A stretch of DNA of 64,000 bases, taken from the IMG/VR virus record IMGVR_UViG_3300009104_001210, positions 124,001 to 188,000 of that record; one strand, 5' to 3'. Each line of letters begins with the position of its first letter. Position 1 is the stretch's first letter. A program made the translations under genes and the position numbers. This document shows, piece after piece, positions 15,343-51,354 of this stretch. Below the pieces are notes generated by a model. That model was not told the DNA's origin. It worked only from the letters and a program-made list of their open reading frames with translations, and did not search any database.

Positions 15343-15587
15343 CATACTATTTATTATTGGAAGAAGATACTGAACAAGATGCTTTGTTCAGCAGTAATAT
15401 CTTAGGAGAAGAAAGTTTTGGTAAATTTTGGCCAGATGAAGGGTTAAAAGCGTTGTACACTATGATGAATCAAAAACCACACCTATTATCACAGGTAGTC
15501 GTTAAAAACGAGAAAAATGAAAAACTCACACTCGAAGAGTTTTTAGACGTAATATCCACATTAAAAATTGAAAAAGAAAAGGCTTGA
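15339..15587 (+). CDS. Hypothetical protein
   Basis: Coupled ORF, 82 aa. Confidence 0.55.
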   Translation: MTYYLLLEEDTEQDALFSSNILGEESFGKFWPDEGLKALYTMMNQKPHLLSQVVVKNEKNEKLTLEEFLDVISTLKIEKEKA

Positions 15588-19114: not shown

Positions 19115-19600
19115 ATATATATACAAGAATACACGAAGATTCTCGCTTCGCTCTAAATTTTAAAGCGCCAATACCCGAACAGTATATAGTAATCAGCGCC
19201 TCACTCTGATAAGCTCACAAAGCACACAAATCATTGAATCCTGAAGGATAAATACACTCGCCACTATTATACTTATGTGATATAATATAGGAAAAAAGCT
19301 ACAGGAGAGTAGAGGATGCGCTCTCTTAATGATACTATAAGCGTCTTACATATCATCCATATCCCACCCTTTTAACCCACCACAACCCACGAATATGATA
19401 GATTCATATGGCCTGGGAGTAAAAAATATAATACCTCACTACTAATTTTGCTTAGCGCGTGTGTGTCGCGCGCCATTTCCTGCCAGTAGGGGGGCTTTTC
19501 TACGCTAATGTAGCACGGTAGCCTATCCAAGCGCTATCGTATGACATTTTGACATACCCAGGCGCTAGGATTATATCACCGCCCGCCAAATTTTTTTGAG

Positions 19601-19637
19601 AAAAGGCTTGACTTATATAGCGTTTCTTTCGTATATT
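19601..19637 (+). promoter_or_regulatory. Sigma70-like early promoter
   Basis: AAAAGGC-TTGACT 19608-13, 18-nt spacer, TATATT 19632-37. Confidence 0.7.
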
Positions 19638-19691
19638 CGTAGTATCATGTAGTATATAGCCCACTTGAAAGGCAGCGCTGTCTAACCTGGT

Positions 19692-19730
19692 AATATACGC
19701 ACCCTGCCTGAGAAAGTCAAGCTTTATTTT
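19692..19730 (-). promoter_or_regulatory. Sigma70-like promoter, minus strand
   Basis: Minus strand AAAATAAAGC-TTGACT, 17-nt spacer, TATATT. Confidence 0.6.
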
Positions 19731-19802
19731 CATTATTTTGGTAAAACCTATACAGGGACCCCCAAATATTCCGCGCGGTACGCTAAAAAGAAAATAGTGA
19801 AG

Positions 19803-19838
19803 AAAAGGCTTGACACGTATTGCTTTATTTTGTATATT
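19803..19838 (+). promoter_or_regulatory. Sigma70-like early promoter
   Basis: AAAAGGC-TTGACA 19810-15, 17-nt spacer, TATATT 19833-38. Confidence 0.75.
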
Positions 19839-20082
19839 CCAGTATGATAATGAGGTTATATACTTGACTTAGATAAAGCCCGCTCCATGAAATAAGGGAA
19901 TAGTACTGAAAAGCGGCAAAGGGCGTAAAGCCGCATGAAAAAAGAATGGTATTTCAACGCTTTAGTTGATACTTATTCTTAGAAGGTTTTCATTACGTCA
20001 GGTTCTTATTCCTTTCTACCTGACATACGGTGGGTGGCTATGAAATACTATACAGCCGCCCACCAAAAAAATTAGAAGGTTT

Positions 20083-20154
20083 GCGGTGGAAGTATCAAGA
20101 GAGATACGCTATTCGTCCAGAGTAGAAGGTGCAGTGCGATTCTGTAACACCGCT
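20083..20154 (+). tRNA. Non-canonical tRNA-like cloverleaf, Gly(TCC)-like
   Basis: Acceptor GCGGTGG/ACACCGC (one mismatch), D stem GTAT/ATAC, anticodon stem CTATT/AGTAG with loop CG-TCC-AG, T stem TGCAG/CTGTA with loop TGCGATT, U73. Confidence 0.55.
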
Positions 20155-20159
20155 CTAAC

Positions 20160-20199
20160 TGAGTAGTATATTACTCACTTGAGTAGTATTTTACTCACT
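20160..20199. repeat. Tandem 20-bp palindromic repeat (operator-like or twin hairpins)
   Basis: TGAGTAGTATATTACTCACT followed by TGAGTAGTATTTTACTCACT. Confidence 0.8.
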
Positions 20200-20247
20200 A
20201 TATTGGAATAGGTAAAAAACGAAAGAAAGGCGGTACGCTAAAAAATA

Positions 20248-20442
20248 ATGAGCGCAAACTTACGAAGTATAATAGACATAGATAAAGAGATACAGCAAGA
20301 AATCGTGCAAGATCTAATAAGTGGTATATTCTATACAGAATGCGACGACGAAACGCTTGAAATTGCTCTGCAAGCGATGTTTGAGTCTCCACAGACAAAA
20401 GCGTATTGGCGCTCAACGGGAGTGATTTTAGGGGACGGGTAG
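20248..20442 (+). CDS. Hypothetical acidic protein
   Basis: 64-aa ORF with AAAGG upstream. Confidence 0.5.
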   Translation: MSANLRSIIDIDKEIQQEIVQDLISGIFYTECDDETLEIALQAMFESPQTKAYWRSTGVILGDG

Positions 20443-39169: not shown

Positions 39170-39604
39170 GGGGCTGAATGGTTTCGACAGATGCTATTTG
39201 ATAATATAGTGCAACGGAGTTTGAGTAAGACTTGCTATAAAAGACTCACAAACCCAAAATGGCGATAAATCGCTACAAGGGTTGGAAATTGATTGGCATT
39301 TAGCCAATACCGAACAGATGTTTGACACTTATGTTGAACCTGCAAGGGCTTCCCAACCAACTTACGCATACGCATAAGTTACTGAGTTACCTAACACTCG
39401 GTCATAAAATGAGTTAGGTGGTAGGATGGTTGGTATATGTCTTTGAGTAGGAATTAGACGATAAAGAAACCTATCAGTTAAACTCATCTGAGTAAATGAG
39501 GTATGGTGGGTTGTTAGTTGACTACCGATTTGGAAACTAACTAAGTTGTAAATGACTATTTATTAAAAGTAGACTGGACGCGGGTTCGAATCCCGCCAGC
39601 TCCA
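39170..39604 (+). ncRNA. ssrA: tmRNA (one-piece)
   Basis: 5' GGGGCTGAATGGTTTCGAC, 3' T-arm GCGGG-TTCGAAT-CCCGC, acceptor CAGCTCC-A with G3:U70; internal ORF ending TAA 39375-77. Confidence 0.93.
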
Positions 39605-39624
39605 CTAAAATTGAGGAGAATATT

Positions 39625-42245: not shown

Positions 42246-42317
42246 GGCCCCATCGTCTAATGGTGAGGACGTCGCCCTTTCAAGGCGGAGATATGGGTTC
42301 GACTCCCGTTGGGGCTA
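42246..42317 (+). tRNA. tRNA-Glu(TTC)
   Basis: Full cloverleaf; loop CT-TTC-AA; no encoded CCA. Confidence 0.92.
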
Positions 42318-42318
42318 C

Positions 42319-42401
42319 GGGCAGGTAGCAAAGCGGTTAAATGCACCAAACCGTAAGTTTGGCGTCGTGAGACTACGGTGGTTCGAATCCATCCCTGCCC
42401 T
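42319..42401 (+). tRNA. tRNA-Tyr(GTA), atypical C33/G38/U73
   Basis: GGGCAGG/CCTGCCC acceptor, long variable arm, loop CC-GTA-AG. Confidence 0.8.
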
Positions 42402-42402
42402 C

Positions 42403-42475
42403 GGGGCTGTAGCTCATTTGGGAGAGCGCTTCCCTTGCACGGAAGAGGCAGCAGGTTCGATTCCTGTCAGCTCCA
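42403..42475 (+). tRNA. tRNA-Ala(TGC)
   Basis: G3:U70, loop CT-TGC-AC. Confidence 0.93.
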
Positions 42476-42476
42476 C

Positions 42477-43070
42477 ATGAAAAATCTATCTAGATCTGAA
42501 ATAAGAGAAATAAAGAATAACCAATCAGAGTTGTATATGGAAAATGATAACTTTAAAGTTATTATACCATATACACATGATGCAGTTAAGATATATGGTA
42601 AAGGTACTAGTTGGTGTGTTTCTTGGGCAAAAGACGAAGACTATCAGTTTTATAATAAAACAGGTAAAATTCTTTTAATACTTAAAAAGAATGTTCATAT
42701 TAAAGATAATACTGAAATAGATGATGTGTGTTATAAAGTATCTATGTGGATGCCATATCAAAAATATTTGCCACTATATAGAAATTTTGGAAAAGGTGGT
42801 ATAGAAGATATAGCTAAAAGATATGAGTCCGATAAAGAGTTATATAAAAGCGTATTAAATGGTTATGTAAATTCGGTTGATGGTATTACTATTCATAAAA
42901 TAACAGCAGATTTTGAATATTATGATGCTGATGATGCGCATTGTTTTATGCCTGTAAAGTATATAGAAGGAGATAAAGTAGTTTGCATAGATAGAGATTG
43001 GGAATTAGATTGGGAAATATTTGATAGTATAAGATATAAGTATGAATATGAGTGGCAATTTGAAGGATAA
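42477..43070 (+). CDS. Hypothetical protein (GTSWC motif)
   Basis: ATG one base after the tRNA-Ala discriminator; upstream track start lies inside tRNAs. Confidence 0.6.
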   Translation: MKNLSRSEIREIKNNQSELYMENDNFKVIIPYTHDAVKIYGKGTSWCVSWAKDEDYQFYNKTGKILLILKKNVHIKDNTEIDDVCYKVSMWMPYQKYLPLYRNFGKGGIEDIAKRYESDKELYKSVLNGYVNSVDGITIHKITADFEYYDADDAHCFMPVKYIEGDKVVCIDRDWELDWEIFDSIRYKYEYEWQFEG

Positions 43071-43074
43071 TAAT

Positions 43075-43148
43075 GTGCTGGTGCCGGAGTGGTCTAACGG
43101 GGTGGGTTGCAAACCCATTATTCACAGGTTCGAATCCTGTTCAGCACT
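43075..43148 (+). tRNA. tRNA-Cys(GCA)
   Basis: Loop TT-GCA-AA, U73. Confidence 0.9.
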
Positions 43149-43301
43149 CATAACTAAGGAGAAATACCAATGTAATATACAACACTAAATATAAGATTAG
43201 GGTTTAGCAGTACCAATATATAAACTGTCGGTGTTTAAAGTACACCACAAAATTTAGTGTACGGATGGTATCTAAAGAGGGACGGAGGCGGGAAAAAATT
43301 A

Positions 43302-43374
43302 GCCACTTTAGCTCAGTTGGTAGAGCAGCTCACTTGTAATGAGCAGGTCCTCAGTTCGAGTCTGAGAAGTGGCT
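43302..43374 (+). tRNA. tRNA-Thr(TGT)
   Basis: GCCACTT/AAGTGGC acceptor, loop CT-TGT-AA. Confidence 0.93.
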
Positions 43375-43385
43375 CAAAAATAATT

Positions 43386-50019: not shown

Positions 50020-51354
50020 ATGACATGGATTAATACTAAAACGGTATTCACTTGGAATACTAAGGACAAAAAGTACGAAGAAACTCTTAATGAGGGTTAT
50101 GATTATACTGGTCCTACTGCTGAATGTTTTGGTTGTTTTATAGCAGGAACAGCTGTACCTACCTCAGATGTAACATATGAGTTGATAGAAAATTTAAAAG
50201 TTGGTGATACAGTACTTACAGTTAATACAAATACAAAACCATTCACATTAGAAGAAAATAAAATACTTGAAATAGCTACACCTGTTCATGAGAATATGGT
50301 TGAGATAAAATTTGATGCTAAAATGTTCAAAGATGGTATGCCAACATATAAGTATAGTTTAGATGAAGCAAAACCATCTCCCTCTAAGATAGCAGTTGGT
50401 CCGAAGAAATTTCCAGAGTTCTGGCTTGAAGTTTCAGAACTAGATAAACTTTCTGATGATGAGAAAGAAGCAGAGTTTAATAAATATATTGACGCCACTT
50501 GGAAGGATTTAGTAAATACAAATACATTTGATCACCCATATTTGGTAAAAAATAAAGGTTGGTGTTCATATAAACCAAGTTTAACTAAAGAAACATATAG
50601 TATGGATGTTGGTCAGCTTGAAGTTGGTGATATTTGTTATGTGCTCAATCCTGTAAGGGGAAGAAGTCCTTTTACTGAGGTAAAGATTGTTAGTATTGAA
50701 GAAAAAAATGAAGAAACCCAAACATATAACTTAGCTAGTGTTGAAAATAATCATAATTATTTAGCTAATGGTGTATTAGTTCACAATAAAGAAAGTTTGG
50801 GTGGTGAAGATGTAACTATTTTAAGTAGTTCTGTTGACCACGCTGATGGAGAAGTACATGCTTCTATGTCAATTGATGATAAAGTTTTAGCAGCTAGTAT
50901 TTCAGGTTTACCTGATACAGATGTAGCATCAGAATTTTTATTGTGGGAATATACGGGCAGTGATATTGCTTCTCAAATTACATTAGTTACTGCTTCAGTT
51001 GATTATATTATGTCTTCTTCTCGTAACAATTGGTTAAATATTGATTGTAAAAATGGTAGATCTGATACTTTTAGAATTACACCTGGACACCCATTATTAG
51101 TTAAGAGTGAAAGTTATGGTGAGGGATATGGGCTTCCTGGTTCTACAGGATCAGCAGCACTTACAGGATCTGTTTGGTATTTTGATTATGCAGGAGACAT
51201 TAATACAAATTATAAACTTTTAAGTTCTTCATTGGAAGAGGTAGACATTGAATCAATTACACCATATAGTGCGTCTGAATCGTCTAGCTTTTTTAGATTT
51301 GATATAGAACCACAGGATACATATTTCGTAGATCACATATTAATACATAATTAG
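50020..51354 (+). CDS. 38-aa peptide fused to two tandem Hint (intein/BIL-like) domains
   Basis: Hint1 C39 CFIAGT, TFDHP, VHN256; Hint2 S259 SLGGED, TPGHP, terminal IHN444. Confidence 0.8.
   Translation: MTWINTKTVFTWNTKDKKYEETLNEGYDYTGPTAECFGCFIAGTAVPTSDVTYELIENLKVGDTVLTVNTNTKPFTLEENKILEIATPVHENMVEIKFDAKMFKDGMPTYKYSLDEAKPSPSKIAVGPKKFPEFWLEVSELDKLSDDEKEAEFNKYIDATWKDLVNTNTFDHPYLVKNKGWCSYKPSLTKETYSMDVGQLEVGDICYVLNPVRGRSPFTEVKIVSIEEKNEETQTYNLASVENNHNYLANGVLVHNKESLGGEDVTILSSSVDHADGEVHASMSIDDKVLAASISGLPDTDVASEFLLWEYTGSDIASQITLVTASVDYIMSSSRNNWLNIDCKNGRSDTFRITPGHPLLVKSESYGEGYGLPGSTGSAALTGSVWYFDYAGDINTNYKLLSSSLEEVDIESITPYSASESSSFFRFDIEPQDTYFVDHILIHN

Follow-up and report, generated by a model that had tools for sequence, protein, structure and literature searches.

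A conserved tRNA-Gly-like RNA in marine T4-like phages

Some marine T4-like phages encode a conserved, tRNA-shaped RNA element of 75 bases that keeps the glycine identity nucleotides, with the exception of position 45, but lacks several of the features needed for decoding. The element is located at positions 20083-20157 (+) of the window, which is the whole 64,000-nt stretch of DNA that was analysed, i.e., bases 124001-188000 of a 216-kb IMG/VR virus record (IMGVR_UViG_3300009104_001210) with 31% G+C. It was first noticed in an initial annotation made from the sequence alone, which described a tRNA-Gly-like cloverleaf; that description holds up. The annotation's interpretation, that the RNA is either a glycine donor for non-ribosomal chemistry or a decoy, is only partly supported. 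As described below, we read the element as a non-decoding mimic of tRNA-Gly that is possibly a ligand or substrate of glycyl-tRNA synthetase (GlyRS).

The cloverleaf and its genomic setting

The phage has a gp23-type major capsid protein, and its nearest cultured relatives are Microcystis phage Mel-JY01 and Flavobacterium phage immuto, at 52-56% capsid identity, so it is a distant T4-like myovirus. Near-identical contigs occur in many marine metagenomes, Tara Oceans among them. The element lies in a 1.1-kb stretch (19115-20247) that has no convincing ORFs and a raised G+C content. The neighbouring genes are uninformative; Pfam and PHROG searches identified an HNH endonuclease, Smr and NUDIX domains, and proteins without matches.

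The 75 nucleotides fold into a cloverleaf with tRNA geometry (7/4-5/5/5 arms and 2/1/4-5/0 linkers). The acceptor (20083-20088 with 20148-20153) is 6 bp plus a G7/A65 mismatch. The D arm (20092-20107) has a 5-bp stem and the loop AAGAGA, and the anticodon-like arm (20109-20125) has a stem of 5-6 bp and the loop C-G-TCC-A-G, with G at position 33 and TCC at 20116-20118. The variable region is AAGG, and the T arm (20130-20146) has a 5-bp stem and the loop TGCGATT. U73 is at 20154, followed by C-T-A. This cloverleaf is the minimum-free-energy structure of the 75 nt (-24.3 kcal/mol, 74% of the ensemble, z = -2.46), and it persists when the whole presumed 403-nt transcript is folded (z = -4.99).

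The fold is more than one would expect by chance. A local-fold scan of both strands of the 216-kb genome gave 93 cloverleaf-shaped optima, of which only three had tRNA arm and linker geometry: tRNA-Glu, tRNA-Thr and this element, which is the third most stable. Eight block-shuffled genome strands (1.7 Mb) gave one such fold, at -11.8 kcal/mol. However, the element is not a tRNA by sequence criteria. ARAGORN at default settings and Rfam find the five real tRNAs and a tmRNA in this phage but not this element, and none of the 4227 Rfam covariance models matches it. The Rfam tRNA model (RF00005) gives no match even at E<=10 on a 1.1-kb or an 85-nt slice. ARAGORN reports the element only at a relaxed threshold (-ps70), where it also reports 561 'tRNAs' in this genome. 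By sequence criteria, then, the element is no better than noise, while by geometry and stability it is exceptional. The tmRNA, at 39170-39607 (+), scores 77.5 bits against Rfam and matches the full 374-position model over 438 nt, although ARAGORN does not report it.

The initial annotation stated that nearly every tRNA invariant is lost, and two corrections are needed here. First, it counted the 3' CTA as a lost invariant. However, none of the phage's five real tRNA genes (Glu, Tyr, Ala, Cys and Thr, at 42246-43375) encodes CCA, and all have only C74; the Glu, Tyr and Ala genes abut each other without spacers. Second, G19, C56, G53-C61, G26/A44 and G46 are retained.

The likely start of the transcript that contains the cloverleaf is a sigma-70-type promoter at 19810-19838 (+), consisting of TTGACA, a 17-nt spacer and TATATT (11 of 12 consensus matches) with an A-rich upstream element; transcription would start near 19846. 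The annotation's proposal that the element is transcribed from this promoter is plausible. The promoter belongs to a family of 7-8 strong AAAAGGCTTGAC-N17-TATATT promoters with A-rich upstream elements, found at window positions 15581, 19605, 19716 (-), 19807, 43393, 44334 and 63573 and at genome position 188121. Three of them, one on the minus strand, crowd into 19600-19840 and face noncoding sequence. In relatives the promoter spacer is replaced, but identity resumes just downstream of the -10 box. All of the more distant of the close relatives (contigs L016-L031) also carry an extra block of ~70 nt with a 12-bp hairpin (AGCGGTTGATAA ... TTATCAACCGCT), inserted at 19743-19745 between the minus-strand promoter and the cloverleaf's promoter.

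The region from 19846 to 20247 (+) would be a noncoding leader or ncRNA of about 400 nt made of structured modules, one of which is the cloverleaf. It contains no conserved ORF, and close relatives differ by 1-2% substitutions and by module-sized insertions and deletions. Related leaders exist in distant relatives. The first module is a hairpin at 19997-20024 (+) with a pyrimidine-rich loop, TTATTCCTTTCTAC. The loop is conserved and the stem covaries in four contigs from distant relatives (L114:1740-1790, L120:150-195, L123:590-640 and L130:600-640), and the hairpin is present even in leaders that lack the cloverleaf. The loop is complementary to purine-rich AGAAAGG-type stretches near the ORF start.

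An 11-bp hairpin at 20029-20064 (+) lies immediately 5' of the cloverleaf. Some close relatives (L016:2290-2330, L017, L019, L020 and L032:692-751) carry a 24-nt insert in its loop (20040-20053), after position 20048, of the form TCGG + N8 + TCGA + the reverse complement of N8. There are four alleles (CTATTTCT, AATCTAGT, CAAGAAAT and CTTCCAGT) in contigs that otherwise differ by less than 1%. Each allele is a perfect 20-nt palindrome, and one looks like an inverted duplication of the adjacent GAAATA. Template switching within a quasi-palindrome could keep the arms of this rapidly changing, hypervariable hairpin identical.

Downstream of the cloverleaf are two tandem 18-nt palindromes, TGAGTAGTATWTTACTCA, at 20160-20197 (+). 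They are deleted as a block in L029 and carry two structure-compatible changes in L026; they may be an operator or an optional hairpin module. A related GTAGTATAT motif follows the promoter at 19608-19637. An exact 15-nt direct repeat, GCGGTACGCTAAAAA, at 19775-19789 and 20230-20244 (+), brackets the promoter-plus-leader unit. Its second copy corresponds to a motif (CGGTAnGCT, an A-rich run, then AGCG) that is conserved just before the small ORF in most of the distant relatives examined.

That ORF, at 20248-20442 (+), is a predicted early gene encoding 64 amino acids, with no Pfam or PHROG match. Three of four substitutions among close relatives fall at third codon positions. Residues 18-47 of the protein match 6-10 tandem repeats in two large metagenomic proteins, P0018 (906 aa) and P0019 (676 aa). 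A small ORF within the element itself was also considered, since a 26-codon GTG ORF starts at 20086 behind an AGAAGG motif. It was rejected because the start codon is absent in L114, L118 and L121 (the last two also being contigs with homologues, see below) and because A-run length and in-loop insertions vary upstream.

Homologues, covariation and identity nucleotides

Nucleotide searches of reference phages with the region and with the 75 nt found nothing relevant. Pattern scans of IMG/VR with the cloverleaf, with a loops-only pattern and with the neighbouring hairpin returned only the same phage, and the metagenome pattern scan, which used the neighbouring hairpin, returned one close relative. 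A second match within the genome, at 50699-50737, lies in coding sequence and is chance. IMG/VR relatives identified by their major capsid protein are fragments that do not reach this region, and a covariance model of the family (see below) found nothing in 42 of them. Contigs at 97-99.9% identity, obtained through identical or near-identical copies of the 64-aa protein, were too similar for a covariation test; the only change in the cloverleaf is G to A at 20122, which turns a U-G pair into U-A.

The downstream gene was more informative. A profile-free HMMER search with the 64-aa protein gave 18 library matches at E<=0.001, most of them 60-127 aa at 40-55% identity. Several of the contigs that carry these genes (L114-116, L118, L120 and L128) have a homologous cloverleaf upstream of the gene. 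A scan with the invariant D-arm 19-mer added L121 from IMG/VR, where the cloverleaf precedes an Hsp20-like gene; in GTDB genomes the same scan found one match inside a coding region of an Anaerolineales MAG, which was rejected as chance. Other leaders of the same gene family lack the cloverleaf (L123, L129 and L130) or carry a different multi-branched domain in its place (L125-127). The cloverleaf is therefore a portable module and not an obligatory part of one leader. Some related leaders contain hairpins with canonical T-loop sequences (GGTTCGAATCC in L128:100-230 and GTTCGAATC in L130:505-550), most of them preceded by a D-loop-like AGTGGTG. ARAGORN and Rfam call no tRNA there, and these leaders look like arrays of tRNA-derived modules.

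Seven distinct sequences align without gaps. All 154 pair cells are standard pairs, and 9 of the 22 pairs have changes on both sides, in 20 cells. None of 500 column shuffles reaches the covariation score, sliding the 3' partners gives only 29-60% paired, and RNAalifold predicts the same structure. The compensatory changes occur in the acceptor, anticodon and T helices, whereas the D arm never varies. However, the seven sequences come from only about five lineages, and one of them (L121) was found with the D-arm sequence itself as the search pattern; the others were found independently of the RNA sequence. Conservation starts exactly at G1 and ends at about position 76, and the flanks are unrelated except for a U-rich run ending at -1, where U is present in 6 of 7 sequences. 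The 3' tail is U73-C74-(A/U)-A. This is the signature of a discrete functional RNA the size of a tRNA, and these results refute for practical purposes the view that the element is a chance fold or a decaying tRNA pseudogene. That view could appeal only to the failure of tRNA finders and to the hundreds of hits at ARAGORN's relaxed threshold. A minus-strand reading was also rejected, because the invariant G-U pair at columns 49-63, and other G-U pairs, would become A-C.

A covariance model built from this alignment scores 99-103 bits on family members, and its next-best matches are real tRNAs aligned end to end. These include T5 tRNA-Val (28.6 bits), T4 tRNA-Gly(UCC) (28.1 bits), T4 tRNA-Thr (26.5 bits) and the phage's own tRNA-Ala (22.9 bits). 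The architecture is that of a class I tRNA. Overall sequence similarity is not specific for Gly, as T5 tRNA-Gly scores only 14.0 bits and is tenth in the list.

Rather, the Gly signal lies in the identity nucleotides. G1-C72, C2-G71, G3-C70, G4-C69, U73, C35, C36, A37 and G10-C25 are invariant, while acceptor pairs 5-68 and 6-67 and four anticodon-stem pairs covary. The elements listed in the initial annotation (G1-C72, C2-G71, G3-C70, U73, C35 and C36) are all among the invariant ones, and they match the published bacterial Gly identity set (PMC9976931). Position 45, for which G accompanies G10-Y25 in that set, is A in five sequences and G in two. Position 34 varies freely (U, G or A), and the 32-38 pair is always Watson-Crick (A-U or C-G) and covaries. 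All sequences have A8, C14, A18 and G55 instead of U8, A14, G18 and U55. Two features stressed in the initial annotation belong to the window's lineage only, namely U54 of the 'GUGC' T loop and G33; the other five sequences in the alignment have GGCAGTT or GGCGGTT T loops and U33. A58 is likewise present only in the window's lineage.

These patterns make it very unlikely that the element is a genuine, if odd, decoding tRNA-Gly(UCC). Such a tRNA would fit the cloverleaf geometry, the Gly anticodon, the identity elements, A37 and the U33 of the relatives. However, free variation at the wobble position includes ACC, an anticodon that bacterial tRNA-Gly is not known to use, the window's copy has G33, and no tRNA finder or model that was tried accepts any of the homologues. 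The absence of U8, A14, G18 and U55 points the same way, as does the constant 32-38 pair.

Possible roles of the element

We suggest that the element is a discrete, selected tRNA mimic, derived from or converged on tRNA-Gly, that does not decode. In this view, which we hold with no more than moderate confidence, it is transcribed early from the host-type promoter at 19810-19838 as part of the ~400-nt leader. Its tRNA geometry, U-rich 5' flank and U73-C74 end would let host tRNA-maturation enzymes cut it out. RNase P, which prefers U at -1, would act at the 5' side, followed by 3' trimming and CCA addition, as for the phage's own CCA-less tRNA genes. The released RNA of ~75 nt, which keeps the GlyRS determinants noted above, would most likely be bound by host GlyRS and probably glycylated. 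The unusual D/T loops (A18, G55), the anticodon loop closed by the 32-38 pair and the unconstrained position 34 argue that it does not enter ribosomal decoding.

The analysis itself establishes the structure, its selection, its boundaries, its modularity and the invariance of the identity nucleotides; release of a discrete small RNA, its processing, recognition and charging by GlyRS, and everything downstream of that are inferences. Since U8, A14, G18 and, in most sequences, U54 and A58 are absent, along with U55, folding into an L shape and recognition by RNase P or GlyRS are not assured, and the invariant loop trinucleotide CCA and the invariant D arm could instead be contacts for another partner. 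No RNA run was listed as containing the stretch, and two metatranscriptomes compared with it gave no contig on it. Pairing between the loop (U)NCCA and UGGAA motifs in neighbouring hairpins was also considered, but there is no covariation with position 34 and no partner exists in L121 or L128.

The main rival is a pure processing or stability module like mascRNA of MALAT1. The cloverleaf would then serve only as an RNase P/RNase Z cutting signal that separates the upstream hairpin RNA from the downstream mRNA and sets their ends, and the released RNA would never be aminoacylated and would have no role. The tRNA geometry, the U at -1, the sharp conservation boundaries, the position between other modules of a transcript and the optional, portable nature of the element are all consistent with this possibility, and tRNA-like 3'-end processing signals are known elsewhere (PMC8457004). 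However, a structure-only signal does not explain the complete sequence invariance of the D arm, of acceptor pairs 1-4, and of U73, C35, C36 and A37, given that other pairs covary freely. We therefore consider it possible, but less likely than a GlyRS-related role.

A decoy or sponge, as the initial annotation proposed in one of its alternatives, appears unlikely. It would bind, without being used as a substrate, a host factor that recognizes tRNA-Gly or tRNAs in general, such as an anticodon nuclease or another tRNA-targeting defence, a T-box leader or GlyRS itself. Presumed early expression from a strong promoter and a tRNA shape with a Gly-type anticodon arm free of decoding constraint at position 34 would fit. 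However, no tRNA-Gly-specific defence nuclease is known to us, and no linked anti-defence gene was recognized in the Pfam and PHROG searches. In addition, the anticodon loop is closed by the 32-38 pair, and in four sequences by 33-37 as well, which makes a poor mimic of an open 7-nt loop.

A cis-regulatory domain, i.e., a protein- or ligand-binding operator that controls the 64-aa gene, is also improbable. The cloverleaf does lie in the 5' leader of that gene in five of six lineages, and the leader has other conserved motifs near the start codon. However, as noted above, homologous genes have leaders without the cloverleaf or with another domain in its place, in L121 it precedes an Hsp20-like gene, and no Rfam riboswitch matches.

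The boldest possibility, which we regard as unlikely but not excluded, is that marine T4-like phages encode a dedicated non-proteogenic tRNA-Gly, a minimal mimic that host GlyRS charges and that stays out of translation. The phage would use it either as a glycine donor for an unrecognized non-ribosomal reaction or to manipulate host sensing of tRNA-Gly charging (GlyRS titration, T-box control or the stringent response). No FemAB, Fem-like GNAT or MprF-type transferase (PF02388, PF13480, PF09924), class IIb synthetase or CCA-adding enzyme was found in the phage genome.

tRNA mimics that keep one amino-acid identity but do not decode are known from plant RNA viruses and, as real tRNAs, from staphylococci, but we found no covariation-supported family of this kind described for dsDNA phages. 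This one is invisible to tRNA finders, absent from Rfam and conserved in abundant marine T4-like phages, where it behaves as a portable module in leaders that are presumably transcribed early. It makes testable the question of whether phages use host GlyRS and tRNA-maturation enzymes for something other than translation. It also shows that relaxed geometric and thermodynamic scans can recover functional tRNA-like RNAs that profile methods discard.

Comparison with other tRNA-like RNAs

The element is not a member of any of the following systems. The closest functional analogues are the non-proteogenic tRNA-Gly isoacceptors of Staphylococcus (NP1-NP3), which donate glycine to FmhB/FemA/FemB (PMC7826273), a parallel correctly drawn in the initial annotation. 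Gly identity is retained in both, the G18G19 doublet is missing, and G replaces U at position 55. The staphylococcal genes have TGC or TGT instead of TTC in the T loop, while the phage sequences have TGC in the window's lineage and GGC in the relatives. Staphylococcal anticodon stems can also be drawn with 6-7 bp, including a 32-38 pair, and loops of 5 or 3 nt. Unsuitability for decoding is shown for the staphylococcal tRNAs and inferred here. However, those molecules are otherwise ordinary tRNAs of one bacterial lineage that are called by tRNA finders and have partner Fem transferases, whereas the phage element also lacks U8, A14 and mostly U54/A58, and no Fem-like enzyme was found in the phage. 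The analogy is functional only and does not imply shared descent.

Among phages, the closest analogues are the small stable RNAs of T4 (rnaC and rnaD) and T5 (RNA1, RNA2 and RNA3), which are phage-encoded, non-decoding, annotated as tRNA-like in T5 and of unknown function. Those lie inside the tRNA gene clusters, whereas this element lies 22 kb from the tRNA cluster in a presumed early leader, and the family model does not match rnaC, rnaD or T5 RNA1-3.

By its inferred mode of biogenesis the element most resembles the mascRNA/MEN-beta tRNA-like elements of mammalian lncRNAs (PMC8457004), with an internal cloverleaf in a longer non-tRNA transcript, a non-canonical anticodon loop, and expected release by RNase P and CCA tailing. 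That system is eukaryotic, unrelated in sequence and has no aminoacylation identity set. The bacterial Y RNA (YrlA) tRNA-like domain (PMC4201824) is a non-decoding tRNA mimic that is also found in phages. However, YrlA works with Ro60/Rsr, and here no TROVE protein is encoded by the phage, there is no Rfam match and all four arms are present.

The closest viral analogues by identity mimicry are the aminoacylatable tRNA-like structures of plant RNA viruses (TYMV Val, BMV Tyr and TMV His; reviewed in PMC5723415), in which a viral RNA also mimics one specific tRNA identity without decoding. Those structures sit at the genomic 3' end with an acceptor pseudoknot, whereas this one is a plain internal cloverleaf in a presumed transcript of a dsDNA phage.
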